Sequence record: MN871444.1
Strand: one strand, 5' to 3'
DNA: 64,000 bases
Position numbers and translations under genes: made by a program
In this document: positions 719-58,658 of the stretch, piece by piece
Numbering within the stretch: position 1 is the first letter of the stretch
Layout of the letters: every line of letters begins with the position of its first letter
The notes under the pieces: model-generated
The model's input: the letters and a program-made list of their open reading frames with translations, nothing else
What the model was told of the DNA's origin: nothing
Database searches by the model: none

Positions 719-1207
719 ATGTCGCTAATCATAAAAAGAACCGAACATGGTGGGCTGATAGATAATTTAAGAGGCCACCACATCGGGGCTAAACTGACAT
801 TAAACTCAGTACGCCATCACAACTGGGAGGCTCGACGACTTAACCTAAGAGACCTCATCACAATCTGTTTTCAAGCAGGTGATAGAACCGTGCGTATCGT
901 CGACACCACTTTATCGATTGATACTCTAACTCCCTGGCCAGGGTTTTATGAACTGCCGGCCCTCTATCTGGGAGTGGTCAGGGATGAAGAGTATTACAAT
1001 GGCTGGAACATAGCTGGGCGTTTAAGTATATTGTTGAACGTTCCACTTCCCGGTCCAAGCGGCGGCGAATATGCCTTCAATGATACCCAATACCCCTATC
1101 TGGTAACCCCGCGGGGCGACTATACTGAACTCTGCATAACCGGTGCAATCGAATGCGACAATGGGGACATCGGTCTGTATTTGCGGGATTTTCCATATTC
1201 ACCGTAA
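719..1207 (+). CDS. hypothetical protein
   Basis: 162 aa ORF, AGGA SD upstream, ends at a terminator. Confidence 0.7.
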   Translation: MSLIIKRTEHGGLIDNLRGHHIGAKLTLNSVRHHNWEARRLNLRDLITICFQAGDRTVRIVDTTLSIDTLTPWPGFYELPALYLGVVRDEEYYNGWNIAGRLSILLNVPLPGPSGGEYAFNDTQYPYLVTPRGDYTELCITGAIECDNGDIGLYLRDFPYSP

Positions 1208-1247
1208 CGGCATAGGAGGAGGCGCAAGCCTCCTCCTTTTATGTTGT
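1207..1247. terminator. bidirectional hairpin with TATGYYG tails on both strands
   Basis: ACGGCATA-GGAGGAGGC-GCAA-GCCTCCTCC-TTT-TATGTTGT between convergent genes. Confidence 0.85.
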
Positions 1248-1256
1248 CCTTTTATT

Positions 1257-1589
1257 TTATTTCGCCTCGGGCAAATCTAAAGTCTGCCCAGCAAATTGAT
1301 GAGTACAATCACTGAGATATTGAATTTTACCATCGGTAATAAAACTATGGCATACTTTATTAATATCTTTCGTCGTATCATCAAATTCATCGGGATTATC
1401 TGATGGTTCTGTCCAGGTCACTAATACTGACGGCTGGAATGTCGGTTTATCCACATCTCCATTAAACAGCCATTGTGGTTGGGTCGTACCACCGGCACGC
1501 ACCTGGTGGCGATGACCACAACCAACGCACATAAATGTGTATCCCAACATCTTACCTGTTGCATCATGGAAAGCTTTTACTCTAGCCAT
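1257..1589 (-). CDS. small Cys/His protein, DUF6527-like
   Basis: CxGCGHRH, W.FNGD.DKPTF.PS.L, CHSFITDGKIQYLSDCTH; family recognised from memory. Confidence 0.7.
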   Translation of the reverse strand: MARVKAFHDATGKMLGYTFMCVGCGHRHQVRAGGTTQPQWLFNGDVDKPTFQPSVLVTWTEPSDNPDEFDDTTKDINKVCHSFITDGKIQYLSDCTHQFAGQTLDLPEAK

Positions 1590-1607
1590 AAAACCTCCGG
1601 GAGATTA

Positions 1608-1889
1608 ATGATGTTAGAAAAATTAAAGACAATGCTATTCGGCCATAAACTTGTCACGTATTCTCCGCCAAAGTCCATTAGAATTATTACAGTAAATGAG
1701 ACCCAATTGATTGTATCCTTAGTTAGGATGCGACATATTCGTTCTAAGAGGCCTGGGGTCTATCATAATGGGGATTGGTGGCTACGAGTCCATCCTGCCA
1801 ATAATTGCGGACCTAAGATAAATTACCCCGGTTACTGGTCATCTATTCAGGCTGCTTCCCAATACTATTCAGATTATCTGGCGGAGTAA
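1608..1889 (+). CDS. hypothetical basic protein
   Basis: GGAG SD before ATG 1608, in frame with the ORF-track entry 1473..1889. Confidence 0.6.
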   Translation: MMLEKLKTMLFGHKLVTYSPPKSIRIITVNETQLIVSLVRMRHIRSKRPGVYHNGDWWLRVHPANNCGPKINYPGYWSSIQAASQYYSDYLAE

Positions 1890-1894
1890 TTACC

Positions 1895-2209
1895 ATGAGT
1901 CAGCGCACTAAAGACACTATCATTAATTTATTCTGTTTGATTTGGTTATTTTCGCTGATGTTTGTGGTGTGCGTTATGCAAAATAAATGGGGTATCGGTG
2001 TATTTCTGGTGGGTTACCTAACCCCTTCTTTATTTTTAGCTGTAGCGGGTTGGGTTGGTGGCAATAATCGGATAGATAAAATCGTGGGGTTTGGATACGG
2101 TCTCATCTATATTGGCGATTCCGCAATTATCGCGTTAGAATCTATTCGATACGATATTGCGGATTGGCGCAACACACCGAAACCCAAACACAAAAATTTT
2201 AGGTATTAG
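1895..2209 (+). CDS. small membrane protein (2-3 TM)
   Basis: long hydrophobic stretches; tightly packed with neighbours. Confidence 0.7.
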   Translation: MSQRTKDTIINLFCLIWLFSLMFVVCVMQNKWGIGVFLVGYLTPSLFLAVAGWVGGNNRIDKIVGFGYGLIYIGDSAIIALESIRYDIADWRNTPKPKHKNFRY

Positions 2210-2212
2210 CAA

Positions 2213-2788
2213 ATGAACTATGTCACCGTCGTAGGTAGTCGTGATGTAACCGTGGACGAATATCTTCTAATGGTAGAATTAGGGATGTGGCTGGCCTACT
2301 ATTATGGGTTGTATGCACGTTCCGGTAAGGCTACTGGTTCAGACCAAGCTTGGCAGCGCGGATTTGAAATCGGAGATGCTCTTCGTGGACGGAAAGGTCG
2401 ACACCAAATATTTTTGGGGTGGGCTTCTTTTGAACGAAAAAATGGCAAGACCAGTGACCGGTACGACATCGTACCGGAAAAAGGTGCTCTTTGGGATAGG
2501 GCAACAGAAATAGCATCGCGCATACATCCTGCCTGGGATAAAGTTAAACCGGGAGGCAGGTTGCAACACACTCGCAACGTGTATCAACTCTTAGGACCCG
2601 ATTTAAGCGAACCGTCAAAATTTTGTTTGTATTGTGCCGATGGCGATAAACATGGGGTACCTAAAGGGGGTACTCGAACCGCGGTAATGTTAGCTCGAGA
2701 GAATAACATACCTCAATTTAATGTCAGAGGTAAAACGCTCGATGAAGCAAAACAATGGGTGCGCAAACAACTCCCTCTAAATGCGTGA
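2213..2788 (+). CDS. SLOG/DprA-like nucleotide-binding protein
   Basis: VTVVGSR, RSGKATGSD, RNVYQLLG and GGTRTAV motifs of phage DprA/SMF-like SLOG proteins. Confidence 0.8.
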   Translation: MNYVTVVGSRDVTVDEYLLMVELGMWLAYYYGLYARSGKATGSDQAWQRGFEIGDALRGRKGRHQIFLGWASFERKNGKTSDRYDIVPEKGALWDRATEIASRIHPAWDKVKPGGRLQHTRNVYQLLGPDLSEPSKFCLYCADGDKHGVPKGGTRTAVMLARENNIPQFNVRGKTLDEAKQWVRKQLPLNA

Positions 2789-2826
2789 AAATCATCAAAT
2801 AAAATAATTATAAACCTATATCACTT
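2786..2826 (+). promoter_or_regulatory. early (vRNAP-type) promoter
   Basis: AAAATAATTATAAACC-TATATCAC; 39/41 nt identical to 9477..9517; resembles the phiKZ early TATATTAC consensus. Confidence 0.75.
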
Positions 2827-2868
2827 CGATGAATAGGTACCTTACTTTACTTTTTTGAGGAGAGCATT

Positions 2869-3282
2869 ATGTTTTATATTTTAGGTTTATTATCAATATT
2901 TGGTCTCGGTGCTATCAGCGCATATCCGTCTGGCAGTATTGTTGTGTGGGCCGTCATCGCCATGGCTGCATTGGTTTGTATCCTTTCTTTTATCCACGAA
3001 AGAAAAGAAACCGTGGCTGCAGTATGGGCGGTGCTTGACGTAGCGGTAGAGAATGAAGAACACTACTGGGAGTTCACGGAGTTTAATTTGGCTCCTTACG
3101 TCATCAATAAATTATCGGATTCTGATGCGGGGGCTAATTTCTGGTTAATGGATTATTCTTTTAAATTGAAGCCCGGGATTAATGGTGATACCACCATTGT
3201 GGAACTCACCTTAGGGCGTAAAAAATATCGTCGGGAATATCCGAGCAATTTCTTCTTACCTACTGACCTGAAACAAGCATAA
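2869..3282 (+). CDS. membrane-anchored hypothetical protein
   Basis: GAGGAG SD; two N-terminal hydrophobic helices. Confidence 0.75.
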   Translation: MFYILGLLSIFGLGAISAYPSGSIVVWAVIAMAALVCILSFIHERKETVAAVWAVLDVAVENEEHYWEFTEFNLAPYVINKLSDSDAGANFWLMDYSFKLKPGINGDTTIVELTLGRKKYRREYPSNFFLPTDLKQA

Positions 3283-3308
3283 CTCTCAGCAAAGTAAAGT
3301 AAGAAATC

Positions 3309-3331
3309 AGAGGGTGGGTAAAACCACCCTC
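3309..3331 (+). terminator. hairpin terminator
   Basis: GAGGGTGG-GTAAAA-CCACCCTC followed by ATTTT. Confidence 0.6.
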
Positions 3332-3357
3332 ATTTATAACGTTATAGGAGTTTTGTT

Positions 3358-3744
3358 ATGTTAGACGAACTGGTTATTGCGGGCGCATTATCTCGATTAG
3401 GGATTACTGGCTTTATTTCTAATTTGGGGGTCATGGCAGTACATCACAACGGGCCGACCGTTACGATTTCTCTGCCCGGTGAACAGACCGACGTTTTGTC
3501 TGGTCGGCAATTCGAAGCCAGCGTCAATGAAACCCATCTGAAAGAAACGGGGAAGCCTATTATCTTTAAAGGTCCTTTATCTTATCGTGATGGTTCCGAT
3601 GACCTAAAAGTTGTATTGTTTGAGAATACTTACGGCCATGCCCTGTTGAACGAAACACTGGGCGTGTGTACCGTATACATCCACAATACGTTGGCCCTGT
3701 CCCTCCATCGCGATAGTGATGGGTTCTGGGTTACCGTTGATTAA
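3358..3744 (+). CDS. hypothetical protein
   Basis: AGGAG SD, 128 aa. Confidence 0.75.
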   Translation: MLDELVIAGALSRLGITGFISNLGVMAVHHNGPTVTISLPGEQTDVLSGRQFEASVNETHLKETGKPIIFKGPLSYRDGSDDLKVVLFENTYGHALLNETLGVCTVYIHNTLALSLHRDSDGFWVTVD

Positions 3745-3760
3745 ACTGAAGGGGAACACC

Positions 3761-4108
3761 ATGGCAGAAGTAACTATAAAAGATCTGAATAATGAAACGC
3801 TGGATATGTTGCGGGCCGTGACCGTGTGGTTACAACGTTCGCCTTACGACCCGGCTGCACTGCATAATGCGGTCGCATTATTGTCCACATCCGTCACTAA
3901 CCTGTTTCAGTTGATCAACAAACAAACTGAGCAACATGATATCGTGGTCGAGAATATCCGGGCTCTCACCAAGAACAATCAATTGATTATAGATAGCCTG
4001 CAGTTACTGGCCGGTAACTTCGTCAATCTGGCATCCATCACAATACCGAAACCGGACGAAGAGGCGTCGGATGAAAAGCCGACATCAAATTTCGAAACCA
4101 AATACTGA
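3761..4108 (+). CDS. hypothetical coiled-coil protein
   Basis: GGGG SD before ATG 3761; heptad-like helical sequence. Confidence 0.7.
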   Translation: MAEVTIKDLNNETLDMLRAVTVWLQRSPYDPAALHNAVALLSTSVTNLFQLINKQTEQHDIVVENIRALTKNNQLIIDSLQLLAGNFVNLASITIPKPDEEASDEKPTSNFETKY

Positions 4109-4126
4109 GTATAGGAGCGACGGACC

Positions 4127-4705
4127 ATGGCTATTAGCGCAACAGCAGTTGTAAACCACAATGATAAAGAATATCACTTGGATGTGCTTCCTTTTCTTTA
4201 TGCCGATGGATTAGAAACGGCTGAATTTCGTCGGGTTATTCGACCAGAACCGGAGGGCTGCCGGTTGGGGGTTATAAGGACCTACATCAAAGGCATTACC
4301 GGTGTCGATGACGATGATGAATTCTCCATCGACATGGGGATGGTTCATCAGGATGACATTGATGCGATGATGGTCACTCACCTACCTCCGGATAAAGATA
4401 AGTATCCCTTCCAATCCAATCCGCGTATCAAAAAGCTTATTCTAAAAGAATTGGCGTATACTGGGCGTGCCGACCCAATCGGTCTAAAGCGCGAACTCGC
4501 CACTGACGGGAAACGAGTATTCACCTACGACCAAGATTTTACCGGACTGGAGCATGTCGTCTCTGCCGAAGTAAACATCTGGTATAAAGACGGGCGTCGG
4601 CCACAGGTCCACGTCATTCTAGCTAAAAGCGGCCTGCAGGCAACTCAACTGGTTGCTGCGCATCTCTATCTGGCTTACGGCACCTATCGTGCCTACCCGT
4701 ATTAA
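4127..4705 (+). CDS. hypothetical protein
   Basis: AGGAG SD, 192 aa. Confidence 0.75.
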   Translation: MAISATAVVNHNDKEYHLDVLPFLYADGLETAEFRRVIRPEPEGCRLGVIRTYIKGITGVDDDDEFSIDMGMVHQDDIDAMMVTHLPPDKDKYPFQSNPRIKKLILKELAYTGRADPIGLKRELATDGKRVFTYDQDFTGLEHVVSAEVNIWYKDGRRPQVHVILAKSGLQATQLVAAHLYLAYGTYRAYPY

Positions 4706-4717
4706 TTGGAGCGTATC

Positions 4718-4969
4718 ATGTTTAATTGGTTCACTGCTTGGAAAGATGGTCAGCTGCAGCGGTATATTTGTAAAAATAAAGCGCTTGACGGGTTAGACTA
4801 TACCGGGGTAAAAAAACCTCTTCGCATACATACCACGTCTGCCTTAGTTGATGGTATAGTAGCAGTGTGGCTAATGCGGCAATCTGTGTTTACGCGACGC
4901 TTCTACACCCCGCCCAAATTTAAGTATGTTACATCGGGCGATAAAGTCAGAATTTGCATGTATCGCTAA
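4718..4969 (+). CDS. hypothetical basic protein
   Basis: GGAG SD before ATG 4718; hairpin at 4980-5004 follows. Confidence 0.65.
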   Translation: MFNWFTAWKDGQLQRYICKNKALDGLDYTGVKKPLRIHTTSALVDGIVAVWLMRQSVFTRRFYTPPKFKYVTSGDKVRICMYR

Positions 4970-5060
4970 AGCGTACATCGGGGAGGAGCCTAGGCTCCTC
5001 CCCATACGCTGCTCATTGATTTTATTTTTTGCCATAATAAGCAACGTAGGGGGGCATACC

Positions 5061-5872: not shown

Positions 5873-5932
5873 GTATGATACGGTGCCAAATAGCATCTTT
5901 TTTTCTGAAGATTGAGGCAAGAGGCTAACTCA

Positions 5933-6241: not shown

Positions 6242-6250
6242 TGACGAGTG

Positions 6251-6327: not shown

Positions 6328-6332
6328 AGATA

Positions 6333-7334: not shown

Positions 7335-7338
7335 TGCA

Positions 7339-27439: not shown

Positions 27440-29326
27440 ATGGGTATTAATGACGCTCGCAATACTGGTAACAACGACGCAGCTCAAGAACGTGCGCAGT
27501 CTGCAGCTCCGCAGTTCGACGAATCTCAAGTACGCCAGGCAGCTCCGCATCGCAAAACCATTACCGGTAAAGGCGGTGTGAACGCACTCCTGTCCCGTCG
27601 CCTGAACCGCGTGGGCGGTAACGAAGACATCAGCAAAATCGCTGAAATGATGCGCAGCTATCTGCGCAGCCAGCTGGACGAAGGTTACGTTCCGACGTTC
27701 GTTATTGTCGATGGCGTGACTTACGAACTGGCGGTATCTGCAATCGTTCCGTCCGTGATGCTGACTGCTCGCGGTGTTAAAACGGTGCTGGCCTATCCGA
27801 TTCTGGTAGAGCCGCGCGACCGTTCCATGGACACTGTCCGTACCGTTCGTGAAGCTGGCCGTGAACTGTCACTGCCGGTAGTAACCTCCGATTTCTACGA
27901 CGCGCGTACCGAAGAGCAGATCCGTAACGCTATCGTTCGTCAGTTCGGTCTGAACGCAGCAGATAGCGATATCAAACTGGTCGGTTACTGCACCCTGCCG
28001 GTAGAAGTATCTTCCGACGACAAAGGCGAAATCGAAGACCTGGCCGCCAACGTATTCTCGGCGCTGGAATCCTGGGTTCGCGAACAACCGGGCTCCGAAG
28101 AGCCGCGTTTCAACCTGGCAGAAATCGACAACACCCAAACTCGCTTCACCGGCAAACTGGACTTCTCTCCGGCGCCGATCAAAACCCTGACCGGCCTGCC
28201 GGTGCGTAACGACGTGACCATCACCACCAAAATGCGTGATATCACGGTCGACAGCCTGCACAGCCAATCCGGCGTTCTGTCCGAACTGAGCGGTTACGTG
28301 GACCTGATCTACGTTGACCCGCAGCCCGAACAAAACCCGTACACCCGTCAGATGTATCTGAACCCGGCGTGCTATCTCCCGAACTTCGTGATTTCGCATC
28401 AGGAAATTCTGGTTAACGCCGTGACCCCTGAACTGGTCCTGTTCGGCCTGGCATCTGCACGTCTGATGCAACAGCCGAACAACGCATTCTACAATGCGTT
28501 CAAACCGCGCCATGGCGTCAAAAACGATACCCGTGATATCGGGGCTATCGGTTACGAGTTCGATCCGACTGGCGAAGGCAAAGGTCCGAAAGCGCCTATC
28601 GATACCGCAGATTCCACCTTCAACCTGCAGACTCTTCTGAGCACTGCATTCCGCCCGGGCCTGCTGTACAGCCTGGACGTGGTAGATGGCGGTGAGTATT
28701 CCTGGGTATACGAAGCGCTGCTGTACGCTGCTAACGGCGATGCCGCGGCAGAAAACGATGTGATTCAGTATGCAGATAACCTGACCAACGGTCATTTCCG
28801 TCAGCTGTGGAACCCGGTCGAAAACCGCGTTGCGGTAGACTCCGGCGACCTGATTCCGATCGGTTACTACATCGATCCGGAAGGCCAACGTAAAGACCTG
28901 CGCGATATCGACTATCTGGCACTGCTGAACATGTTCGGTGGCAGTGATGCGGAACTGGTTTACCGCTGGTCCGAAACCTTCGGTAACCCGAACCAATCTC
29001 CGCAGCAACGTCTGGATGCACGTGTACGTATCCTGAAATCGCTGCTGAGCAACAACCTGTTCATCAAACGTATCGCACATCGCATCACCCTGACCCCGAC
29101 CTTCATCGACGTGCTGGCCACTGCCATCTCCAAAGCGGGCATCACGATCGTTCCGGAAACGGTGTTCAGCGAACAGCAGACCTATACCCGTGGGTCTACC
29201 ACCCTGGCTAACTACGCTCTGACCGGCGGTCAGTCTCCGCTGTTTGCAGGTATGCAGCAGCAGACCGTTGCCGGTTACAACACCGTATACCAGCCGCGTG
29301 GCGCAGGCAGCCGTTTCGGCGGCTAA
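27440..29326 (+). CDS. chmA: chimallin, phage nuclear shell protein
   Basis: 628 aa; LLSRRL.R, G.PVRND.T, L..GYVDL.Y, LDV.DGGEYSW, IP.GYY....G..KDLRD.D motifs; directly upstream of nvRNAP beta'. Confidence 0.92.
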   Translation: MGINDARNTGNNDAAQERAQSAAPQFDESQVRQAAPHRKTITGKGGVNALLSRRLNRVGGNEDISKIAEMMRSYLRSQLDEGYVPTFVIVDGVTYELAVSAIVPSVMLTARGVKTVLAYPILVEPRDRSMDTVRTVREAGRELSLPVVTSDFYDARTEEQIRNAIVRQFGLNAADSDIKLVGYCTLPVEVSSDDKGEIEDLAANVFSALESWVREQPGSEEPRFNLAEIDNTQTRFTGKLDFSPAPIKTLTGLPVRNDVTITTKMRDITVDSLHSQSGVLSELSGYVDLIYVDPQPEQNPYTRQMYLNPACYLPNFVISHQEILVNAVTPELVLFGLASARLMQQPNNAFYNAFKPRHGVKNDTRDIGAIGYEFDPTGEGKGPKAPIDTADSTFNLQTLLSTAFRPGLLYSLDVVDGGEYSWVYEALLYAANGDAAAENDVIQYADNLTNGHFRQLWNPVENRVAVDSGDLIPIGYYIDPEGQRKDLRDIDYLALLNMFGGSDAELVYRWSETFGNPNQSPQQRLDARVRILKSLLSNNLFIKRIAHRITLTPTFIDVLATAISKAGITIVPETVFSEQQTYTRGSTTLANYALTGGQSPLFAGMQQQTVAGYNTVYQPRGAGSRFGG

Positions 29327-29419: not shown

Positions 29420-30739
29420 ATGGAAATAAAAGAATTCATTCCTACGAAACGTGCCCCGTATGGGTATGCGATTTCGACGGGATGTGATATCTATTATGAC
29501 CCCAGGAGGAAAGGTGTTTATCCGGAAATAGCGAATCACGAAGCGACATTAGCGCGGTTACGTGGTACCCCTATTTTCATTAACGATATCGACACCTCTA
29601 CAGCCGAAGGTCAAGATAAACTTGATTCTCTTCTATACACCAAATACGACGGCGGGAGCATCAGTATCCTCCCTAGTTGTGAATGTGGGGAAACAACTAC
29701 TGTATCCAAACTGAATACCTATTGTCCTAACTGCTCCACGATCGTAGTGCCACCGTCTGAGCGCCCAATAGAATCGAATCTCTGGATTCGAGCGCCGGAT
29801 GGGGTAAAGGCATTAATCAATCCCCAAATGCTTATCATTTTGTCGAAAGCATTTACCATTAATGGCTGTAACTTCCTGGAATGGTTGTTAAACCCCACGT
29901 ATAAAAATGGGACTCACAACAACCTAAAGTTAGAACTCTTCAAAGCGTATAACTTTCCGCGCGGCATCAATGCTTTCTATGATAACTTTGATGACATAGT
30001 CACTGCGTTATTGGACCGTTCCATTTTCAATGGCAACAACGCCAAGCGCTTAGAAGTGAAGCTGTTTATCGAACAAAATAGAGACAGGGTGTTTACTCGG
30101 TACATCCCAATACCGAACCGCATTTTGTTCATCACGGAAAAAGCAATCACCGCAACATATGCCGACAAACACATGGCCTCGGCACTTGATGCAGTACGCA
30201 CTATTTCCGATCTTAACCAACACATGGAACCTCCATCGATCCGTAGGCGTGAATATGCTGCAGCAAAAGCCTGTCTGCAATTAGCGTCGTATTACGTGAT
30301 GCAATATAAGAAGATCATCGGCGGCAAATATGGGTTCTTGCGAAAACACCTGTTTGGTACCAGACAGGCGTATAGCTTCCGGGCAGTTATCAGTAGTCTG
30401 CACGAAGCCCATCGCATGGATGAACTTCATATCCCGTGGGGGGTGGCGGTAGGGGTATTCAGGAAACATCTGGAGAGCAAATTGCTGAGGCGGGGGTATA
30501 CTCCGAACGAGGCGGTAAAACTATTATTCGATCATACTCTGACCTATCACCCGCTGCTGGATACGTTGTTCAAAGAAATTATTGGTGACCATCCTTCCGG
30601 GAAAGGGTTTCCATGCTATTTCTTACGAAATCCAACGCTGGATAGATTGTCGGGTCAACTATTCCACATTACGTTAGTCAAACCAGATCCAAACATCAAA
30701 ACGGTGAGTCTATCACTAAACGTCATCGCGCCAATGAAT
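29420..30739 (+). CDS. nvRNAP beta' N-terminal subunit, exon 1 (phiKZ gp55-like)
   Basis: Zn ribbon CECG..CPNC; G.LRKHLFG.R..YSFRAVIS; RNPTL; ends ...VIAPMN. Confidence 0.9.
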
Positions 30740-31218
30740 AAACTTGCGTGGGTTGATTCACGCATGTTCCTTCCAGTAGAAATACTGGTCGAACACTCTC
30801 CTAACTGCTGGGAACTCCTGTTAAAAATACTTCTACCAACTTAAGCTGGAAACAGACTTGAGGGCTAGGCTTGAACCCTAGGTATGGTGAAAATGAAGTA
30901 GTTGGGACGATCAAGCAACGAAGCTCCTACCGGCGCAAGCCCACGGAGTGAGTCCAACGACTATCGAAAACTACATCGGTTAACCGACTAATGACATTCG
31001 TATAAAGTCGAATGGTTGCGTAAGCAATTAAAGTGAGTAGAGTAGGGCCAAGTGGTGTGAGGCATGGCAATAAGTCCTCCCTAGCAATTGATGCTAGCCG
31101 AAACGGAGAGCACCTGACCGGGTAAAGCCGAAGGTGATGAGATAGTCTTGTATCCGACTGTAATGGTCGGGAAGTTCTAAGAGAACTGCGTAGCCTAACG
31201 ACCTACGTGAAAGTAACG
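30740..31218 (+). mobile_element. group I intron, 479 nt, no homing-endonuclease ORF
   Basis: exon ends in U (30739), intron ends in G (31218); P3 CTCTCC 30796-30801 / GGAGAG 31105-31110; P7 GACTA 30959-30963 / TAGTC 31143-31147; P8 CACCT..AGGTG; removal restores in-frame N-ADFDGD. Confidence 0.92.
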
Positions 31219-31458
31219 GCTGATTTTGACGGTGACGCCTTGGGTGGATTACTCATACTCGATAAAAAGATGTATGAGCGTTTTGAACGAACTTCCCAAC
31301 ATACCGGGGTTCTTGATCTGCAAAAAGCCAGAACACTATCCGGTAAAATAACTTTACCGAAGCCCGTACTGGCGATTTATGCAAGTTGGATGCATGAACC
31401 ACCGGCTGATGTAGAAGAAGCTAAGCTGTTCAAGAAATTGTTAGGGCAGCATGATTAA
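31219..31458 (+). CDS. nvRNAP beta' N-terminal subunit, exon 2 (catalytic ADFDGD)
   Basis: begins GCT GAT TTT GAC GGT GAC; spliced product about 519 aa. Confidence 0.9.
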   Translation, partial: ADFDGDALGGLLILDKKMYERFERTSQHTGVLDLQKARTLSGKITLPKPVLAIYASWMHEPPADVEEAKLFKKLLGQHD

Positions 31459-36027: not shown

Positions 36028-37575
36028 ATGCAAATGACATTAGCTCCGTATTCTAACGGAGTGTCTGAAATAACAGTCAGTCATAGGCAACAATCCATCA
36101 CGTTTAAAGGTACGACCTATAATCGTACCATCTTGAAAGAAAAAGAAGCTTTCTTTCAAGACATTAATGCGTATTGGGATAGTTTGCCCATGTCGACCCA
36201 AGATGCCATATGGGCCACGTATTTGGAGCTGGACCGTGCGTTTGTTTCAGAAGAAGGTACCAACAGTGTACACAAAACACTTCATCAACTACTCCTGCAA
36301 TTGTATCAATATCACAGCATGGACAGCTTTCGGTACTGGATACGTTTCAAGTCCCGCGTCAAATATCCCCCCGATTTAAAAGAAAAATACAGTCCGGAAT
36401 ACCCCAAAGAAATGACCTATTTGCTGGAAGACTATCGCGGTCTACTGGCGTTGACTTTGGGTCTGCGGATCGTACTGCCGATCGTATTGCGCTATACCCT
36501 GGCGGTAGAACGCGAACAAAAGGGAAAGTATAAAGAGTTCATGTGCCTCAAGTTACTTGAAGGCACCGAGTTAATGAACTCTCCGGAAATGGCCCAGATT
36601 AAAGGGTACGTTACCGCTGCAGCTAACGTTAATGAAAAGCCTCCATCAATGTCAGCAATCCTGGGTGGTTTAGGGTCTACTCAGATCCCCATGTTCTTCC
36701 TGGCACATGCTATCATTCGGCGTGTTATCGTTAGTGAGCTGAAAACTGAAGGCGAACCAGTTAACATTGTTTCGAACGTCTGGAACTTTGTTTCTCAAAT
36801 GGATTTAGACAAACGTTTCGGCGGGGCCACTAAGGATAAGAACCCAACTGGGGCAGTGGCTGAAGATGATAAACAATCGGTTGCGGAGATTTACAAAAAT
36901 AAGGAACGTATTTCTGCATCTTCCCCGGTAACTGAAACTGTGTTTGTTGGCATGTATTTGAGTGCCAAGAAATACATTGACCCGACTATCGACGATGCAT
37001 TAGCTGAGATGCTCTGGACGCATCACAAGCAACTCAAATCCTTCGATCCCGAGCCATGGCAGTTGGTATTGATGGGGTGGGTGTTGGCACCACATGTAAC
37101 GTTTAAAACCAGGGACTATTTAGAACCTGAAGATCGCAATCGGGGGATTGCTATCGCACAAGCGTTATTGTGGCATTGGGGGTTCCCGCAACTTGCGGCC
37201 TTGCTGACAGCTACTCGGGCAGCACCAATCCATTTTGAAGGGGCGTCACAATCCAGTACGCAGGTTTCATTGATGAAGCGTGCTTGGCGGGGGCCTACCG
37301 AAGAAATGGTGCGTGAAATTAATGAACAGTATCCCCACCACAAACTCATTCGCGGTAAGTTCGATCCTAACCAATCGAACTTCGCAGTAGTTGCCATCAA
37401 TGAATTGTTTTCCATGGTGGTGTCCGGGGACTGGGATTTAAACTGCCCAAGATCGTTGATTGATGTTTGTGGGATGTCTGAAGATTTATCGGGGTATGCG
37501 CCTCCCACTGATTTGAAATATCAGCTGTATGATTTTGTTATAAAGAACAACCGCCGTAAAAGCGGAAAACAGTAA
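36028..37575 (+). CDS. nvRNAP sigma-like specificity subunit (phiKZ gp68-like)
   Basis: 515 aa, helical; FF..IN.YW and AQ.LLWHWGF motifs; canonical position before picA. Confidence 0.8.
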   Translation: MQMTLAPYSNGVSEITVSHRQQSITFKGTTYNRTILKEKEAFFQDINAYWDSLPMSTQDAIWATYLELDRAFVSEEGTNSVHKTLHQLLLQLYQYHSMDSFRYWIRFKSRVKYPPDLKEKYSPEYPKEMTYLLEDYRGLLALTLGLRIVLPIVLRYTLAVEREQKGKYKEFMCLKLLEGTELMNSPEMAQIKGYVTAAANVNEKPPSMSAILGGLGSTQIPMFFLAHAIIRRVIVSELKTEGEPVNIVSNVWNFVSQMDLDKRFGGATKDKNPTGAVAEDDKQSVAEIYKNKERISASSPVTETVFVGMYLSAKKYIDPTIDDALAEMLWTHHKQLKSFDPEPWQLVLMGWVLAPHVTFKTRDYLEPEDRNRGIAIAQALLWHWGFPQLAALLTATRAAPIHFEGASQSSTQVSLMKRAWRGPTEEMVREINEQYPHHKLIRGKFDPNQSNFAVVAINELFSMVVSGDWDLNCPRSLIDVCGMSEDLSGYAPPTDLKYQLYDFVIKNNRRKSGKQ

Positions 37576-41011: not shown

Positions 41012-43078
41012 ATGGTAGAGTACATCCATAATGAGTTAACCGTTGAAAACCTAGGTGGTATATCCAGCCTTCAGGTTTTTCCGGGGAATAACTCAAGTCC
41101 GCGTGAACAAATGGCTACCAGCCAAATAGGTCAATCACTACTCCCGTACGGTTGTGCAGAAAGGTTTCTACAAACGGGAGATGAATTTCAGTATGGGACA
41201 TGTACTTTCAACGTCAACATTCCGGTGGATGCCGAAATTATCGATGTCGTACATAAGGTCAATACCGCAGTACATCACGGTAAAATCAAAGTCAACCCGG
41301 TAATGTCCGTGATTTGGCGAGATATCGATAAAGTGTCTGTATTCGGCGTAACGCACATTGAGCGATATCATGCCGCACATCAGGCTTTCGGTATCCGTTA
41401 TAAAGAACACAAAACCAACATGGCCAAAATTAGGCCAGGTATGGGGGTTGAGTGCGGCACGGTACTGATGCAGTCTCCTGGCATTTCTGAAAATGGTGCT
41501 TATGCCTATAGTGTCAATGCTAACGTGGCTTTTCTATCAGTCCCTGGGGTAGATAACGATGGGATTATCATGGGTAGTCAACTCATCCGTGATTTTACCG
41601 CAACTGGGATCGTTAGCCTAAATGCAAAATGGGGTTCAGACAAATATCCGTTAAATTTGTACGGGACAAAAGATTATTATCAGCCATTTCCAAATATTGG
41701 TGATAAAATTAGGCCCGATGGTTTGGTCATGGCGTTTAGGGAATACGACGTCTTTAGCGCTGTCGTGGATATGACACCAGAAGCGCTGATGGAAGTTGAT
41801 TATACTTGGGATACCTGCTATTACGGTAAGCCCAATGGCGAGGTTCTGGACATCACGGTATTGCATCAAAATACCCGCCCCGAAATTACCCCAACGGGAA
41901 TGTCTGAACAAGCACGGATGTATTTCAACGAATCTCAGCGTTATTATGGTCAGTTAAGAAATACTTACAATGAATTACGTCGTAAGTATCGCAACCCGAC
42001 ACTGACCCCGGCGTTACAAAATTTGCTGGTGCGGGCGGAAGCTGAAAATCCAGAGCAGCAAAGTAATGTCCAAAAAACAATGCATAAAGATTCACTCGAT
42101 GACTGGCACGTGTATCTCACTTTCGCGTATGATGTCGTCCCCTCCATCGGTTCAAAGTTAACGGACCATCATGGTGGTAAGGGCGTCATCGTAGGTATTT
42201 GGGATGAGCAGGATATGCCCATCGATGAATGGGGTACTCGCGCAGGCCTCATCATGGACCCTGAATCTACCATCAACCGCATGAATTTGGGTCGTATCTA
42301 TGAGCACGGCACAAATTGGTATTCCGCCAGAATAATCAATCGATTGATGCATCTGCGTGAAACTCGACCCACCACATTCTATCAGGATGCCTGGGCCGAA
42401 TTGATGCAGTACTACAAAACAGTGTCTATCAGACATTATCGACTGATGGAATATCATTATCGCGATGATAAAGATATTATCAACCACATCAATTACGTCA
42501 TGCAGTTTCGTGATGGCATTCACCTCCACATGCCGCCGGATCGTGAAGATGCGGGATATCCATCTTATTGCAACCTCAGAGAAACCTATCCGGAATTCAA
42601 GGCCGGACCTGTCGAATATAGGACGCGTAAAGGTCGCTGGATAACCACCAAAAAGCCAGTCAAGATTGCCAGTATGGCGATTATCCTGCTAGAGAAAACC
42701 GGGGAAGATTGGTCAGCGGTATCCACGCCTAAGATGCAGCATTATGGCATTCCCGCAATGGTTACGAACGATGACAAGTATTCCACTCCCGGTCGCGAAC
42801 AGGCAGTTAAATTGCCTGGCGAAGCTGAGACTCGACTGCTTGGTTCTACCGTTGGTGGTGATGTGACTGCTGACCTGGTCGATCTTCCGAACATTCCTGG
42901 AGGACAAAAACAAATTGCGAAGACATTGCTATTAGCGGAAAACCCATCTGACGTTGGGGATATCCTGAATAAAGAACAATTCCCTGATGGTTCCAATAGG
43001 GCGCTGCAGCTGAACAAGCATGTTCTGCTGTGTTCCGGTATCACGTTTGCTTCTGAAGGTGACTCATGCGACAAATAA
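41012..43078 (+). CDS. nvRNAP beta subunit, C-terminal part (phiKZ gp71-73-like), uninterrupted
   Basis: NSSPREQM, GSKLTDHHGGKGVI, INRMNLG.IYE, GEAETR. Confidence 0.9.
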   Translation: MVEYIHNELTVENLGGISSLQVFPGNNSSPREQMATSQIGQSLLPYGCAERFLQTGDEFQYGTCTFNVNIPVDAEIIDVVHKVNTAVHHGKIKVNPVMSVIWRDIDKVSVFGVTHIERYHAAHQAFGIRYKEHKTNMAKIRPGMGVECGTVLMQSPGISENGAYAYSVNANVAFLSVPGVDNDGIIMGSQLIRDFTATGIVSLNAKWGSDKYPLNLYGTKDYYQPFPNIGDKIRPDGLVMAFREYDVFSAVVDMTPEALMEVDYTWDTCYYGKPNGEVLDITVLHQNTRPEITPTGMSEQARMYFNESQRYYGQLRNTYNELRRKYRNPTLTPALQNLLVRAEAENPEQQSNVQKTMHKDSLDDWHVYLTFAYDVVPSIGSKLTDHHGGKGVIVGIWDEQDMPIDEWGTRAGLIMDPESTINRMNLGRIYEHGTNWYSARIINRLMHLRETRPTTFYQDAWAELMQYYKTVSIRHYRLMEYHYRDDKDIINHINYVMQFRDGIHLHMPPDREDAGYPSYCNLRETYPEFKAGPVEYRTRKGRWITTKKPVKIASMAIILLEKTGEDWSAVSTPKMQHYGIPAMVTNDDKYSTPGREQAVKLPGEAETRLLGSTVGGDVTADLVDLPNIPGGQKQIAKTLLLAENPSDVGDILNKEQFPDGSNRALQLNKHVLLCSGITFASEGDSCDK

Positions 43079-44997
43079 AAGCCAGGGACCTACTCAACCT
43101 CACCCGTGAAGAACTCAATCACGATGAGCAATTCATGTTGGAGCTTGAGTTTGATGATGGCGTGTTGGTAACTTCCTGGCGTACCACGCTCTATAGTTGG
43201 TATATTTGGGAGTTTCAACGACGGTATCCAAAAGCGCCGTTGTTAATGCATCACCACGTGGGGAATCGTCGATTCAATAAAGGAACTACGAATAAGACGA
43301 TGAACCTGTGTTTCTGGGATACGTTCAGCGCATATGGTGGTGAACTCCATCCAGAAGATTTATCCAAAACCGTCGATGATATTCGCCAGCAGTTGTTTAA
43401 TGACGTGGAATATGTTGAGGAATATGTTCCAACATTAGACATCGATGATTTCATTGGGGTGTTGGACCACCCCAAAATTAAAGAAATCAATAATGCCGTT
43501 CAACCGAATGAAACCAGCATCCAACAAGCCTACAAAGCAATTACTGTGGTATTAAAGGATGAGGATGAATTACGGGATAATGAATTAGCTGAAGCCATTA
43601 AATCAGAGTTTCCTAAAGTGGGTCAGGCGCTTCAATGCGTTGGTCCCCGTGGTTATCTGACTGATATGGATTCTCACCGGTTCGATTTCCCGATCCTGGC
43701 GTCGTATGGTAGCGGCATATATACCCTGGCCGAATCATTGATTGAATCGCGGTCAGCAACTAAGTCCCTTATCTTTAACAAGGAGCTTATTAAAGAAACC
43801 GAATATTTCAACCGTGAGATGCAGCTTCTGTGTCACGTCATGGCTGGGCTGTCGGGTAAGGACTGCGGTACTACTCGAACATTACCGGTGCGTATACGGA
43901 ACAAGGATGACCTGAAAACGTATAACGGCAAATATCGGGTTACTAGTAATGGCTTGGCGGCCATCAAATCAACCGACACCCAACTGATTGGTGAGATTGT
44001 TCGCATCAGGGCGGTAAGTTGTTGTGAGGAAAAAGCCAGGGGATATGTGTGTCCGGTGTGTTATGGTGATTTGCATTTATCGGTCCCGTATGGTTCCAAT
44101 ATTGGCCATGTTGCAGCTACTGAGATTTGTCGTGAAATCACTCAGAGGGTATTGTCGAATAAACACCTCGACCAATCTTCGATGATTGAACGAATTAGTC
44201 TATCTGAATACGATGCTAAATTCCTGGCAGTCCATCCCTGCGGGTCTAAGCTGGGACTTGCTCAGGGGATTAAACCAGGAAGCGTCCGTATCCAGTTTAG
44301 CCGTAAATGTGCGCCGTATCTGGCCGACATCCGGGGCATGGATGAAATCCCAGAACACAACCTGGCCCGGTATTCCCATATCGATAGCGTGATTATGAAT
44401 ATCGATCGTCCTGGGGAAGTTACGCTATCGGTCCCCATCACGGTAGCCATGGGTTCCCGTATTGGTTATTTCACCAGCTCGTTCTTGAAACATATGCGTG
44501 CAAGCGGCTGGTCTATGACTGCAAACGGGGACTATGAGGTTTCCCTGACGGGGTGGGATAGTAAGCGACCAATCTTTGCGCTGCCGATGAAACAAATGAA
44601 CATGCTTGATTTCAAGCAGGAGTTCGAAGCACTCATCAAACGCTCCAAGAAATATGGAACCGGTCGTCAGTCCCCGGATCTCAATAACCCAGAAGTAATG
44701 GCACAGGAAGTGCAAATTATGGCGGACCTCCTGAACTCCAAGATTTCGACAAACGTAGTCCACGTTGAAATCATGTTGCAGGCCACTATGGTGATATCTG
44801 AAAATGACCGGGATTACAGAATCCCACATCCTACAGAACATCGCGAATATGGTGGGTTCAATAACCTGATTAGATTCAGAAGTATCTCTGGTGCGTTGGC
44901 CCATGAAAAACAGGCCGATACACTGAATACCATGAGTTCTTATCTGGTGACAAACAGGCAGCCGCATCCGGTGTATGACCCGTTCTTACGGGTATAA
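43066..44997 (+). CDS. nvRNAP beta' C-terminal subunit (phiKZ gp74-like)
   Basis: Q..GPRGY.TD, ESRSA.KSL, EYFNR..QL, DCGT, C..CYG, TQ..LS.KH. Confidence 0.9.
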   Translation: MRQIKARDLLNLTREELNHDEQFMLELEFDDGVLVTSWRTTLYSWYIWEFQRRYPKAPLLMHHHVGNRRFNKGTTNKTMNLCFWDTFSAYGGELHPEDLSKTVDDIRQQLFNDVEYVEEYVPTLDIDDFIGVLDHPKIKEINNAVQPNETSIQQAYKAITVVLKDEDELRDNELAEAIKSEFPKVGQALQCVGPRGYLTDMDSHRFDFPILASYGSGIYTLAESLIESRSATKSLIFNKELIKETEYFNREMQLLCHVMAGLSGKDCGTTRTLPVRIRNKDDLKTYNGKYRVTSNGLAAIKSTDTQLIGEIVRIRAVSCCEEKARGYVCPVCYGDLHLSVPYGSNIGHVAATEICREITQRVLSNKHLDQSSMIERISLSEYDAKFLAVHPCGSKLGLAQGIKPGSVRIQFSRKCAPYLADIRGMDEIPEHNLARYSHIDSVIMNIDRPGEVTLSVPITVAMGSRIGYFTSSFLKHMRASGWSMTANGDYEVSLTGWDSKRPIFALPMKQMNMLDFKQEFEALIKRSKKYGTGRQSPDLNNPEVMAQEVQIMADLLNSKISTNVVHVEIMLQATMVISENDRDYRIPHPTEHREYGGFNNLIRFRSISGALAHEKQADTLNTMSSYLVTNRQPHPVYDPFLRV

Positions 44998-53580: not shown

Positions 53581-53621
53581 TCAGCATAAAAGGGAGGGCG
53601 AAAGCCCTCCCAATATGTTGT
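53581..53621. terminator. bidirectional hairpin with TATGYYG tails
   Basis: TCAGCATA..GGGAGGGC-GAAA-GCCCTCCC-AA-TATGTTGT. Confidence 0.85.
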
Positions 53622-55463: not shown

Positions 55464-56819
55464 ATGTCCATGAAGTCATATGCCCGTGTTAGCCTTGAAG
55501 CGCTAGCACCGCAAAAAGAAAATAAATTCGGTGCATTCGCCGTTCCACTACTGCGGCAATGGCGAGATTATAGTGATGGCGATTACACGACCTCTTTTCG
55601 TAAAAGCGTTGCTCCGATGTTGGTCAAACTCATCAAAGACACGACCGGCATGCCTGTAAAATTTCGTATCGTGCAGGATGCTTCGGAGGCTTACACCTGC
55701 ACCATTATGCCGGGTGTATTTACGGAGAAGCACCCGTTACTATTTGAAGTATTGGGTAATCGGTCACACACACCAGCATTCATCAATCTCGTAAGAAAAA
55801 TGCGAGAGGATAAAACAAATATCCTTGAGGGTAGTGTGGACCAACGTACCGGTAAAGTGGGGGGTATTTTGGCTGAAGTCGACCACCTCATCACCATCGG
55901 TACATCCATCTTGGAAAATGATACCTTTACACCCGAGTGGATTGTGGGGTTGATTGGTCATGAGTTAGGCCATGCGCATAGTTTCTTAGTATCTCTGGCG
56001 TATCGTTCAACCACAGCCTGGGCTATTCGTACGGCCATTGAAGCACTCCATGGGACTAACAGTGACACCAAGGGATTTGTCATCACCATGGATGCCATGG
56101 CGGATTACTTGAATCTCGATGCCCTGCAACGTAAAGCCCTGGCTGAATCAAAAGCTAAAGATGAAGCCATGACTTTAATTGTTCTAGATAAAGCCGCAGA
56201 AGCAGCAAAGTCTGAGTTGGGTACTTCCTTAGCAGACCGCTCAGGTACCGAGTTTCTTGCCGACCAATATCTCGTCCGGCTGGGGGTAACTCGCGGTTTC
56301 GCGGAGGCGTATAACTTTATTCAACGCCAACGCGAGCCGGGGTATTATTACAGTACCCACAAATTTTTGTTTGTTGAATCGGTAAAAGTCGCTTTAGCTG
56401 GTGCGGGCTGGGTTGTTGGTTCTGCTCTTACTGGCAGCATTGTCGCAGGCGAACTTCCAGTAACGTTAGTGGTTTCAGCCTGCGTGTCTATGTCGGCGGA
56501 TAAAATCATCGAAGCTACACATGCCGATCCCTATAGTCGGCTGACCCAAATGCGAAATGATTTAATTCAATCGACTAAAGAAGTTGACGACCCTGCTATC
56601 CGCCACCGACTTCTGTCGGACATTGATTTTGTGGATAATCTATTGAAGGATATGAAACCCCACAAAAGCATCGTACAAAAATTAGCTGGGGTGTTCGTAC
56701 CTAACGTTCGCACACTGAACAAACAGCAACAGCATCTTTCGATGCTTGAAGCGTTGTTCAATAACCCGTTATACCTTCGTCAAGCCCAACTTAATCAAAT
56801 TGCCAATCAACCCGAATAA
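55464..56819 (+). CDS. virion protein with zincin HExxH motif
   Basis: GHELGH followed by E.LADQY; N-terminal SLE (S-x-E) site. Confidence 0.8.
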   Translation: MSMKSYARVSLEALAPQKENKFGAFAVPLLRQWRDYSDGDYTTSFRKSVAPMLVKLIKDTTGMPVKFRIVQDASEAYTCTIMPGVFTEKHPLLFEVLGNRSHTPAFINLVRKMREDKTNILEGSVDQRTGKVGGILAEVDHLITIGTSILENDTFTPEWIVGLIGHELGHAHSFLVSLAYRSTTAWAIRTAIEALHGTNSDTKGFVITMDAMADYLNLDALQRKALAESKAKDEAMTLIVLDKAAEAAKSELGTSLADRSGTEFLADQYLVRLGVTRGFAEAYNFIQRQREPGYYYSTHKFLFVESVKVALAGAGWVVGSALTGSIVAGELPVTLVVSACVSMSADKIIEATHADPYSRLTQMRNDLIQSTKEVDDPAIRHRLLSDIDFVDNLLKDMKPHKSIVQKLAGVFVPNVRTLNKQQQHLSMLEALFNNPLYLRQAQLNQIANQPE

Positions 56820-56825
56820 GGATTC

Positions 56826-57344
56826 ATGACCATGGCCAATTATGCACTGACCCAACTGGCACGTAAACTGTTGACCCTGGCGGGTTCAGCTCCGAAAGAT
56901 AGTCGTTGGGCCTCTAACGAAACTACCACCACCGTGCGCGATGAAAATACTCGCATGGAAAACTTACTGGCCGCGGGCATCGCTTATAGCCTTCCGCTAC
57001 CGCCGGATGCAGTACCGTCCATCGATGTATTTTTCGGTCAGGTTTATGGTACTAAACTCACCGCGCTTATTTCGGAAGTTTGTGAGCAGCGCGTGCTTAA
57101 CCCGGAACTGATCATCCTGGCGGTAAAACAAGCCTGGAGTTTCCGTTATGCTCAGGCGCATGACGCCAATATTCTTCTGCTGAACGGCCTGATGAAGTTT
57201 AATGCCATCGGTGGACTAACTTCTACCTACGAATATGCGCTGGGTGAGTATCAGACCGATTATTCGATGCTGTTCACCATCCTCAGTCAGATCAAGGCGG
57301 CAGTACAGCCGTATTTCGCCGAGGACAACCAAGATGCAGAATAA
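56826..57344 (+). CDS. virion structural cluster protein
   Basis: AAGGA SD; position in the structural operon. Confidence 0.75.
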   Translation: MTMANYALTQLARKLLTLAGSAPKDSRWASNETTTTVRDENTRMENLLAAGIAYSLPLPPDAVPSIDVFFGQVYGTKLTALISEVCEQRVLNPELIILAVKQAWSFRYAQAHDANILLLNGLMKFNAIGGLTSTYEYALGEYQTDYSMLFTILSQIKAAVQPYFAEDNQDAE

Positions 57345-58617
57345 TGACATTTATGGGTTTTCTGAAACTATTTCCATGGAATCATTCGATAACATGGGTG
57401 GATTCGAAACCCTCGAAGCCTCGTCATCGCTTAACGAATTGATTACCACCGCTAATCAGATTCAGGGTATCCGCGATACCATTCTCGGTGATGGTGTATC
57501 TAAAACTGATGCGATGGCACTGGAAAGTTTAGTTCCAGATTTCTTTCCGCAGCATATCCCGATGCATTCTTTCACCCAGATGCGAACCCACACGAACCTG
57601 ACGGTTACGCTGGAGTCCATCAAATCGTGGACGACGATGTCAATCGCAAATATGGTCAAGGCGTTATATCGTTTTCTGTTGACTTGCGTAAACTGGGTAA
57701 AAAATGCAATCAAAGGTTTCTTCGGTGCCGGTAAAGATGTCAAGCGTGTAATTTCCAATACCGAGGCTACCGTAAAAGCCACCGACGAAATCGTTACCCA
57801 GATTCGTGGCGTCACGGACAATAAAACGGAAGACGCCATCCATAAAGCCAAGGAAAAAGCAAAGCTGCTGATTGCGGATCACTATACCCAGCTTATGCGT
57901 CGGATGGTAACTGACCGGGGTACTGAAAACATGGTCAGGCATTTGCGCAGTCAGCTGCATACTGCCTACGCTAAACTGGATGTGTTAACTGAAAAATACG
58001 TCCACGCTTTAGAGATCTCCAGTAAAGGTGAGATTAATTACCAGGAAGCCAATAGCATTTTTGCTGACCTGGCTAGCTTTAATCCGGGTAGTTTACTTGA
58101 CCTGGACCTGGAGATGTCTTATTTTGACTTAAAACAAAAACTGTCACATCTCGACGGTGCAGCTTCGGTTCAGTCACTATGGGACTCTCTGAAACAACAA
58201 AACATGAAACGTGCCTCATGGGAAGTTAAGACCAGCGATGTTATTTCTGGCATGCTGCAATTAACTACCCGTCTGGAAGAACTGGCTGACGATATTATCG
58301 ACCCAGAACTGGATACTACGATCCCTACCGTGGTTGATTTCTCCAGCAAAGTGCGCAATGCGCCGGAAGGAATCACACCCAACCTGGCTTTGGCCAGTCA
58401 ACGACTGACCGAAGGGTTTACGGTAGCCCAGCATGGTATTGGGATTTATGTTGAGTTGTTAAAAGCGTTTATCACCCTGACGGATTTGGGGTGGAAAGCA
58501 TCAAAAAGCATAATGGGTGATATCGCCACCAGGGCTAAGACAGACTGCAAGGATTACGCTGCGGTTATTAAAGATATCGAACAGCGGTTAAAATCCACGC
58601 TACAAAAACAAAGTTAG
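57334..58617 (+). CDS. inner-head/ejection-type protein with S-x-E propeptide sites
   Basis: GAGGA SD; ISMES, ALES, TLES; DA.ALE....F.....P..SFT pattern of giant-phage head proteins. Confidence 0.75.
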   Translation: MQNNDIYGFSETISMESFDNMGGFETLEASSSLNELITTANQIQGIRDTILGDGVSKTDAMALESLVPDFFPQHIPMHSFTQMRTHTNLTVTLESIKSWTTMSIANMVKALYRFLLTCVNWVKNAIKGFFGAGKDVKRVISNTEATVKATDEIVTQIRGVTDNKTEDAIHKAKEKAKLLIADHYTQLMRRMVTDRGTENMVRHLRSQLHTAYAKLDVLTEKYVHALEISSKGEINYQEANSIFADLASFNPGSLLDLDLEMSYFDLKQKLSHLDGAASVQSLWDSLKQQNMKRASWEVKTSDVISGMLQLTTRLEELADDIIDPELDTTIPTVVDFSSKVRNAPEGITPNLALASQRLTEGFTVAQHGIGIYVELLKAFITLTDLGWKASKSIMGDIATRAKTDCKDYAAVIKDIEQRLKSTLQKQS

Positions 58618-58658
58618 ACAACATATCGGGAGGGCTTTCGCCCTCCCTTTTATGCCGA
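58618..58658. terminator. bidirectional hairpin with TATGYYG tails
   Basis: ACAACATA..GGGAGGGC-TTTC-GCCCTCCC-TTT-TATGCCGA. Confidence 0.85.

Follow-up and report, generated by a model that had tools for sequence, protein, structure and literature searches.

Why should so many GC-rich hairpins in one bacteriophage genome be followed by the same short word, TATGYYG (Y = pyrimidine), and what does this word do? The case concerns the last 64 kb of Serratia phage KpGz_1 (MN871444.1, 269,351 bp), a stretch of 64,000 nucleotides that we call the window and to which all coordinates refer unless genome positions are indicated. A sequence-only reading of this DNA had pointed out the association and offered three explanations for it: a termination or processing signal specific to the phage RNA polymerase (RNAP), a terminator-reinitiation switch, or a 3′-end tag for the handling of mRNA. 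Our follow-up analysis leads us to consider these elements, very probably, as chimallivirus transcription terminators of the type mapped in phage phiKZ. The first of the three explanations is therefore retained, though such a signal was already known, and the other two are not.

A conserved box behind intergenic hairpins

All 19 TATGYYG sites previously listed are present, 10 of 10 on the plus strand and 9 of 9 on the minus strand, and each lies 0-10 nt 3′ of a GC-rich hairpin; the sites are real, and only the positions on the minus strand had to be corrected, being one base low with the 8-mer counted. The word occurs 57 times in the window, as against 36.4 +/- 6 in shuffled sequences (57 was reached in 0 of 100 shuffles), and the excess equals the number of hairpin-associated copies. 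For genome-wide counts, the whole genome was rebuilt from the GenBank record and scanned for strong hairpins (perfect stems only, of at least 7 bp with at least 5 GC). This gave 125 hairpins, 86 intergenic and 39 intragenic according to our own heuristic gene calls, on which the tandem and convergent classes used below are also based. TATG is found at an offset of 0-5 nt after the stem in 77 of the 172 intergenic hairpin flanks, for 3.6 expected (Poisson P ~1e-72), with a sharp peak at 2-3 nt, and on one flank in total of the 39 intragenic hairpins. Chance or composition as the source of the motif was considered and is ruled out by the shuffles together with the intragenic-hairpin control. Over the genome, 55 of the 245 copies of TATGYYG stand behind a hairpin.

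The 77 tails define the consensus CC-(T/A)2-3-TATG-Y-Y-G-T: the position matrix has T or A at -1, then TATG and two pyrimidines, followed by G in 61 tails and T in 52. The stems are 7-12 bp long, with loops of 4-7 nt and a folding free energy (dG) of -11 to -23 kcal/mol. Five or more T among the first 8 nt are present in 29 of the 77 tails only; 48 have fewer than five, 25 have at most three, and in 42 no T-run is longer than 2. Most of the TATG tails thus lack the U-tract of canonical Rho-independent terminators (about five or more U in the 8 nt after the stem), and the box often occupies its place. The likeness to canonical terminators lies elsewhere, in a GC-rich hairpin near the release site, a location at gene ends and bidirectional use between convergent genes; the difference is that most KpGz_1 tails carry a conserved word other than U instead of the U-tract.

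The terminators mapped in phiKZ

A total of 133 termination sites of phiKZ were mapped by ONT-cappable-seq, a nanopore (Oxford Nanopore Technologies, ONT) method (Putzeys et al. 2024, Microlife; PMC10914365). Among them, 61 predicted intrinsic terminators share the consensus 5′-BCCYCCCCHWWDGGGRRGGBYTTATKYYGT-3′, a stem-loop followed by a TTAT region (PMC10914365). As far as can be judged from sequence, the KpGz_1 motif is this already published motif in a distant Klebsiella/Serratia relative, and is not new. Both phages have a GC-rich stem-loop and then TTAT-K-YY-GT (K = G or T) at gene ends, often as bidirectional pairs, and both belong to one family with its own multisubunit RNAPs. In KpGz_1 the stem-loops are GC-rich, the conserved (Y)TTAT-K-YY-GT lies directly 3′ of the stem, the sites are at gene ends, oriented along transcription and paired where genes converge, and the genome encodes chimallin as well as homologues of gp55, gp68, gp71-73, gp74 and gp123, i.e. 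RNAPs of the chimallivirus kind. There are differences too: read along the coding strand, the stem opens with the G-rich arm in KpGz_1 and with the C-rich arm in the phiKZ consensus; an A precedes the box (AATATG, GATATG) in a quarter of the KpGz_1 boxes, where the phiKZ consensus has T; and KpGz_1 is far from phiKZ in host and clade.

We placed the coordinates of the phiKZ transcription termination sites (bioRxiv supplement) on 73 kb of the phiKZ genome, which gave 10 TATG-type sites of the 61, at the resolution of nanopore 3′ ends. Five of these 10 terminators have their 3′ end at UAU|G, three have it one base past the G and two have it two bases past the G. In phiKZ, the box therefore brackets the release site, and much or all of GYYGT is outside the released RNA. 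Ends located between UAU|G and +3 argue against a 3′ tag on the mRNA, which is why this proposal of the sequence-only reading is disfavoured, and in favour of an action on the polymerase or on the DNA bubble. We infer that RNA 3′ ends would fall at the boxes of KpGz_1 as they do in phiKZ.

The terminator as we picture it would consist of a GC-rich stem-loop, two or three T/A-rich bases and the box TATG-Y-Y-G-T, and release by the phage's own multisubunit RNAPs would most likely take place at the U|G step of this box or immediately downstream of it. The box would then sit at the release site, often replacing a proper U-tract. Between convergent genes, either one hairpin with a box on each strand or two hairpins arranged tail to tail would stop transcription from both directions.

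Terminators have also been described in another phage of the group, 201phi2-1. Its main terminator motif A is reported to resemble the phiKZ motif, its motif B elongates the hairpin, and eight of its terminators were assayed in a terminator trap, their functionality being reported as confirmed (PMC11512511). Going by its description, the lengthening of the hairpin by motif B is comparable to that by the mirrored CRRCATA flank (R = purine) in KpGz_1.

A looser resemblance exists with pause signals. The class II signal of T7 RNAP is ATCTGTT, and the bacterial elemental pause is described by G-10 Y-1 G+1. Like the KpGz_1 box, these are short conserved DNA words placed at the polymerase active site, where the RNA ends in a pyrimidine and an incoming G follows. 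It is a resemblance only: unlike the elemental pause, KpGz_1 has no G at -10, and the enzymes are unrelated or distantly related.

Direction of the box and sites in the window

The box behaves as a 3′ element with a direction, and many sites look palindromic because two such elements stand on one hairpin. Two-sided tails are present at 13 of 26 convergent junctions but at 8 of 59 tandem ones (Fisher P 7e-4), and one-sided tails at 24 of 59 tandem and 10 of 26 convergent junctions. In tandem contexts the box is on the sense side of 25 hairpins and on the antisense side of 15 (15 versus 8 if the strict TATGYYG is demanded), and at sites made of two hairpins it is found only on the transcriptional 3′ side of each. 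The suggestion that the word is a directional 3′ tail is borne out by these counts, and the site cited for it, at 6251-6327, is as described: two separate hairpins each have their own 3′ tail and their far sides are devoid of the motif. The sites in the window are as follows, 'terminator' being understood as putative; where the orthologous site of the nearest annotated relative, Klebsiella phage vB_KvM-Eowyn (Eowyn), was compared, it is indicated.

1207 to 1247, both strands: two-faced terminator, hairpin 1214-1237 (dG -20.6), plus tail TATGTTGT at 1240-1247 and minus tail TATGCCGT at 1207-1214, between convergent genes 719-1207(+) and 1257-1589(-)
6251 to 6327, both strands: two hairpins with head-to-head tails, hairpin 6251-6284 with plus tail 6289-6296 and hairpin 6310-6327 with minus tail 6299-6306, the tails forming the palindrome TATGCCGT-CG-ACGGCATA between convergent genes 5933-6241(+) and 6333-6851(-)
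10501 to 10534, minus strand: antisense-facing box in a tandem context, hairpin 10512-10534, tail TATGCCGC at 10501-10508 overlapping the Ala-Ala-stop of gene 10072-10509(+); the sense (+) side is GGTTTTACG, without a box; identical in Eowyn
12946 to 12978, plus strand: hairpin 12946-12969 with plus tail TATGCTGT at 12971-12978; compensatory stem changes in Eowyn, TATG kept
15919 to 15950, plus strand: hairpin followed by TTTATTTTGT, which fits the published phiKZ consensus YTTATKYYGT with T at K
16510 to 16550, both strands: two-faced terminator, hairpin 16521-16540, tails 16543-16550 (+) and 16510-16517 (-), genes 16163-16510(+) and 16551-17393(-); Eowyn has a different hairpin, TATGCCG kept
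18476 to 18510, plus strand: one-sided terminator after the PhuZ-like gene 17487-18458(+), hairpin 18476-18500, tail TATGTTGT at 18503-18510; Eowyn has CATATGCCGC at this place
23603 to 23632, plus strand: ordinary hairpin with a T8 tail, no TATG box
25933 to 25987, both strands: two-faced terminator, hairpin 25939-25969, minus tail 25933-25940, plus tail 25980-25987 located 10 nt past the stem, between the DNA polymerase gene 23699-25933(+) and gene 25979-27064(-)
32128 to 32160, plus strand: ordinary hairpin with a T6 tail, no TATG box
35869 to 35909, plus strand: hairpin upstream of the gp68-like gene, hairpin 35880-35899 with a GAAA loop, plus tail TATGCCGT at 35902-35909, weaker mirrored TATGGTGT at 35869-35876; Eowyn has TTTATGCCGT and a different loop
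40521 to 40554, minus strand: one-sided terminator, hairpin 40529-40554, tail TATGCCGT at 40521-40528, serving the small minus-strand gene 40578-40922; no box on the plus side
48059 to 48102, both strands: two-faced terminator, hairpin 48068-48091 with a UUCG loop, tails 48095-48102 (+) and 48059-48066 (-), genes 47689-48054(+) and 48107-48307(-)
53581 to 53621, both strands: two-faced terminator, hairpin 53592-53611, plus tail AA-TATGTTGT without a U-run, minus tail TTT-TATGCTGA, genes 52975-53580(+) and 53621-55357(-)
58618 to 58658, both strands: two-faced terminator, hairpin 58628-58647, tails 58651-58658 (+) and 58618-58625 (-), genes 57334-58617(+) and 58650-61601(-)

The two ordinary poly-U hairpins, reported earlier at 23603 and 32126 (the second starts at 32128 in our scan), were found to have plain T-runs as described.

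A consequence of the mirrored box is visible in the coding sequences. Two genes had been noticed to end in GCG GCA TAA, and they do, at 10072-10509(+) and 25979-27064(-); a third, 58650-61601(-), ends in TCG GCA TAA. Among the last codons of the 343 genes of the whole genome, GCA ranks second with 19; 22 genes have the CA-TAA end, and CRRCATA occurs within 6 nt after the stop in another 25. The CA-TAA ends come from the overlap of the stop codon with the mirrored box, CRRCATA(A). A degradation tag of the ssrA-like Ala-Ala type had also been envisaged for them, and was dropped since the overlap explains the codons.

Some side observations concern individual sites. Two unlinked sites with double hairpins, at 6289-6306 and at genome positions 103,376-103,399, share the 18-nt palindrome TATGCCGTCGACGGCATA, in which two tails meet head to head around a core of GTCGAC. 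At 10501-10726, the hairpin is followed by a conserved gap of ~190 nt without a called gene, in Eowyn too; it could hold a small minus-strand transcript ending at the box 10501-10508. The tail TATGCTG contains an ATG, at 12972, from which the open reading frame (ORF) 12972-13442 had been called, but the real start is probably downstream, because the annotated start of the Eowyn orthologue is ~25 nt further on, after the ribosome-binding site AAAGGAAAT. A T-rich block, CTTTTTATTTTTT, stands 10-25 nt after several tandem-context terminators (13640-13660, 23625-23650, 29375-29400 and 32152-32180) and might belong to a promoter of the following gene; early promoters of phiKZ are similarly close behind terminators. 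In contigs of relatives from two public runs, one T of the spacer at 18500, just ahead of the TATG box, is missing.

Conservation in relatives

Enrichment of the motif near hairpins of related phages had been suggested as a check. The same hairpin scan was run on ten other phages, in a region of ~42 kb that surrounds the chimallin gene (24 kb in RSL2), and the hairpin flanks with TATG were counted.

LucasX: 14 of 48 flanks, P 5e-14, enriched
Eowyn: 12 of 36 flanks, P 2e-9, enriched
Proteus phage 10: 12 of 32 flanks, P 2e-8, enriched
RAY: 9 of 30 flanks, P 2e-7, enriched
phiKZ: 8 of 26 flanks, P 3e-5, enriched
RSL2: 3 of 14 flanks, P 3e-3, weak
201phi2-1 (42 kb scanned): 4 of 20 flanks, P 4e-3, weak
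Goslar: 3 of 16 flanks, P 1e-2, weak

The expected enrichment is thus seen in the first five phages, and it is absent from the regions scanned in BONAISHI (2 of 34 flanks) and AgentSmith (0 of 6), where the counts are not significant. TATG is the most enriched 4-mer behind the hairpins of KpGz_1, Eowyn, RAY and LucasX. At orthologous sites of KpGz_1 and Eowyn, TATG is kept while the spacer (TT to CA, AA to TT), the two pyrimidines (TTG to CCG), the loops and the stems vary, the stem changes being partly compensatory.

Alternative explanations

Several points weigh against terminators as the explanation. The public runs containing KpGz_1 DNA are metagenome contigs, and the four runs that were mapped gave neither molecule ends nor strand information; in phiKZ itself, ONT 3′ ends do not separate termination from processing. 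About half of the intergenic hairpins have no box, so the box is not obligatory. Of the 59 tandem hairpins, 15 have a box on the antisense side, and seven have it on that side only (e.g. 10501-10534): such boxes need antisense transcription or some other role. The sense side of these seven is usually T-rich.

What else, then, could the box be? One possibility is a late promoter, used by the non-virion RNAP (nvRNAP), either as a terminator-reinitiation switch restarting transcription at the G or as an antisense promoter. The sequence-only reading was right in recalling that TATG is the core of phiKZ late promoters, with G as +1 (PMC4666361); moreover, 10 of the 14 residues of the gp123 pocket that reads TATG are conserved in KpGz_1, and the sense-side box in tandem contexts is upstream of the next gene. 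Yet a late promoter should be upstream of a gene of the same strand and point into it, and at the 13 two-sided convergent junctions both boxes face antisense, so that as promoters they would fire into the facing gene. For six phiKZ terminators of the TATG type, the published promoter table lists no transcription start site within the same ten-base span. This absence and the antisense geometry argue against re-initiation. Conservation extends past TATG, to YYGT, in the box but not in the late promoters of phiKZ (PMC4666361), and a start at the G of the 12971 box would remove the called start codon. All in all, we regard a promoter role as highly improbable.

An element acting at the RNA level was also considered, in which CRRCAUA would pair with UAUGYYG and the resulting long helix would be a processing site, a stability element or a protein-bound tag. 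Two-sided sites can indeed form such a lower stem, the folding energy being 2-15 kcal/mol more negative when 12-nt flanks are included, and the second motif of 201phi2-1 elongates its terminator hairpin (PMC11512511). But many sites are one-sided, as counted above; the YY/RR positions are often mismatched across the two sides (e.g. CAACATA facing TATGCCG); at two-hairpin sites, neither hairpin has a box on its 5′ side; and with the 3′ ends seen in phiKZ, from UAU|G to +3, the released RNA would be deprived of most of the 3′ half of the helix. We find this explanation highly improbable. As for a palindrome or cruciform acting at the DNA level, to which a dimeric phage protein would bind to serve replication, packaging or the organisation of the nucleoid, with no relation to transcription, it would account for the overall inverted repeat and for the 18-nt palindrome found at two loci, but it is scarcely credible when box-to-box spacing goes from 2 to more than 40 nt, many sites are one-sided, the sites are confined to gene ends with an orientation that follows gene direction, and the phiKZ sites coincide with mapped RNA 3′ ends.

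A pocket shared with the late promoters?

If the boxes are terminators, how would they be recognized? In a 2026 structure, the non-template TATG of a phiKZ late promoter (-3 to +1) is bound in a pocket under the beta-lobe of GP123, the beta-like core subunit of the nvRNAP (PMC12809450). Late promoter and terminator box have the same TATG with a pivotal G. At promoters this G is +1; at half of the mapped phiKZ terminators, it immediately follows the last base of the RNA. They differ in that late promoters have no conservation after TATG and need other downstream sequence (PMC4666361), whereas the terminator box has YYGT and a preceding hairpin. We may only speculate that TATG punctuates both ends of chimallivirus transcripts through one GP123 pocket, an idea that we consider possible and rather doubtful. 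An elongating enzyme reaching TATG just past a hairpin could rebind it in the promoter register, with the RNA ending in UAU and G incoming; in this way it might pause 4-6 nt beyond the hairpin, allowing release without a U-tract, and YYGT would tune the downstream fork.

The gp123 homologue of KpGz_1 has 10 of the 14 named contact side chains identical, with Y406W, for an overall identity of 32% (binomial P 0.003). Across 11 phages S144, F151, K/R158, H331, S334, Q466 and an aromatic residue at 406 are near-invariant. Several of these positions are changed in BONAISHI and AgentSmith, two phages that encode chimallin and have no box, and whose pockets are the least conserved (4 of 14 and 6 of 14); these two are also the most divergent overall, so the comparison of pocket with box is confounded by relatedness. 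In RAY, Proteus phage 10 and LucasX, by contrast, the box is present although only 6 of 14 pocket residues are identical. The 3′ ends at UAU|G in phiKZ, the 10 of 14 pocket residues and, with the confounding just mentioned, the pocket changes of BONAISHI and AgentSmith fit the shared-pocket idea. We found no paper linking the terminator box to the GP123 pocket, and the structure paper (IUCrJ) does not mention termination.

The phage and other features of the window

Positions 1-8000 of the window are 100% identical to the KpGz_1 record. This record gives Klebsiella pneumoniae as host and was deposited without annotation; Eowyn, its nearest annotated relative, has ~83% DNA identity. From its gene content, KpGz_1 is identified as a nucleus-forming phiKZ-like jumbo phage (chimallivirus), because it encodes chimallin and homologues of the nvRNAP subunits, several RNAP subunits in the window being split. 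A tblastn search with the phiKZ proteins gp55, gp68, gp71-73, gp74 and gp123 returned a homologue for 5 of 5, the first four being in the window and gp123 outside it, at genome positions 24747-26372. Besides the DNA polymerase gene already mentioned, the window contains:

27440..29326, plus strand: gene of chimallin, the nuclear shell protein (phrog_4795, E 1.8e-87)
29420..31458, plus strand: gene of the nvRNAP beta′ N-terminal subunit (phiKZ gp55-like), interrupted at 30740-31218 by a group I intron of 479 nt
36028..37575, plus strand: homologue of the nvRNAP sigma-like subunit (phiKZ gp68), tblastn E 7e-33
41012-43078, plus strand: homologue of the nvRNAP beta C-terminal part (gp71-73-like), within entry 41012..44997
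43066-44997, plus strand: homologue of the nvRNAP beta′ C-terminal part (gp74-like), within the same entry 41012..44997

The chimallin of KpGz_1 is 94.5% identical to that of Eowyn and less than 30% identical to those of the other chimalliviruses among the matches listed (~27% with phiKZ over the aligned part), and GC content is 46% in KpGz_1 and 37% in phiKZ. On this comparison KpGz_1 appears as a deep branch among the chimalliviruses, close relatives such as Eowyn apart.

Rfam at gathering thresholds and ARAGORN gave no match in the window. The 479-nt insertion in the gp55-like gene (30740-31218, plus strand) matches the full Rfam group I intron model RF00028 with 40.2 bits and E 8.7e-9, below the gathering score of 50. 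It sits inside the catalytic NADFDGD codons, exon 1 ending with ...ATG AAT at 30739 and exon 2 beginning with GCT GAT TTT GAC at 31219; it is preceded by U, has a terminal G and contains no ORF. Eowyn lacks the insertion, and the gp55-like orthologue of Goslar has an annotated group I intron with an HNH gene at the same place.

DNA of KpGz_1 or of a relative was found in 24 public runs, all of them metagenomes or wastewater RNA libraries, in the form of contigs. Metagenomes of freshwater, surface and wastewater origin, from at least 11 studies, contain close relatives (95-99% identity over 12900-18600 of the window).

Implications

The box is kept across clades whose chimallins are less than 30% identical and hosts spanning 37-55% GC, and this conservation points to recognition by a conserved phage component, not to RNA folding alone. 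For annotation, the box offers a rule that is both simple and specific by which terminators can be placed in chimallivirus genomes, where standard terminator finders that demand a U-tract would miss most sites of the KpGz_1 kind. If the recognizing component were the beta-lobe pocket that reads the late promoters, then the selection of starts and the selection of stops would share one mechanism in these non-canonical RNA polymerases.

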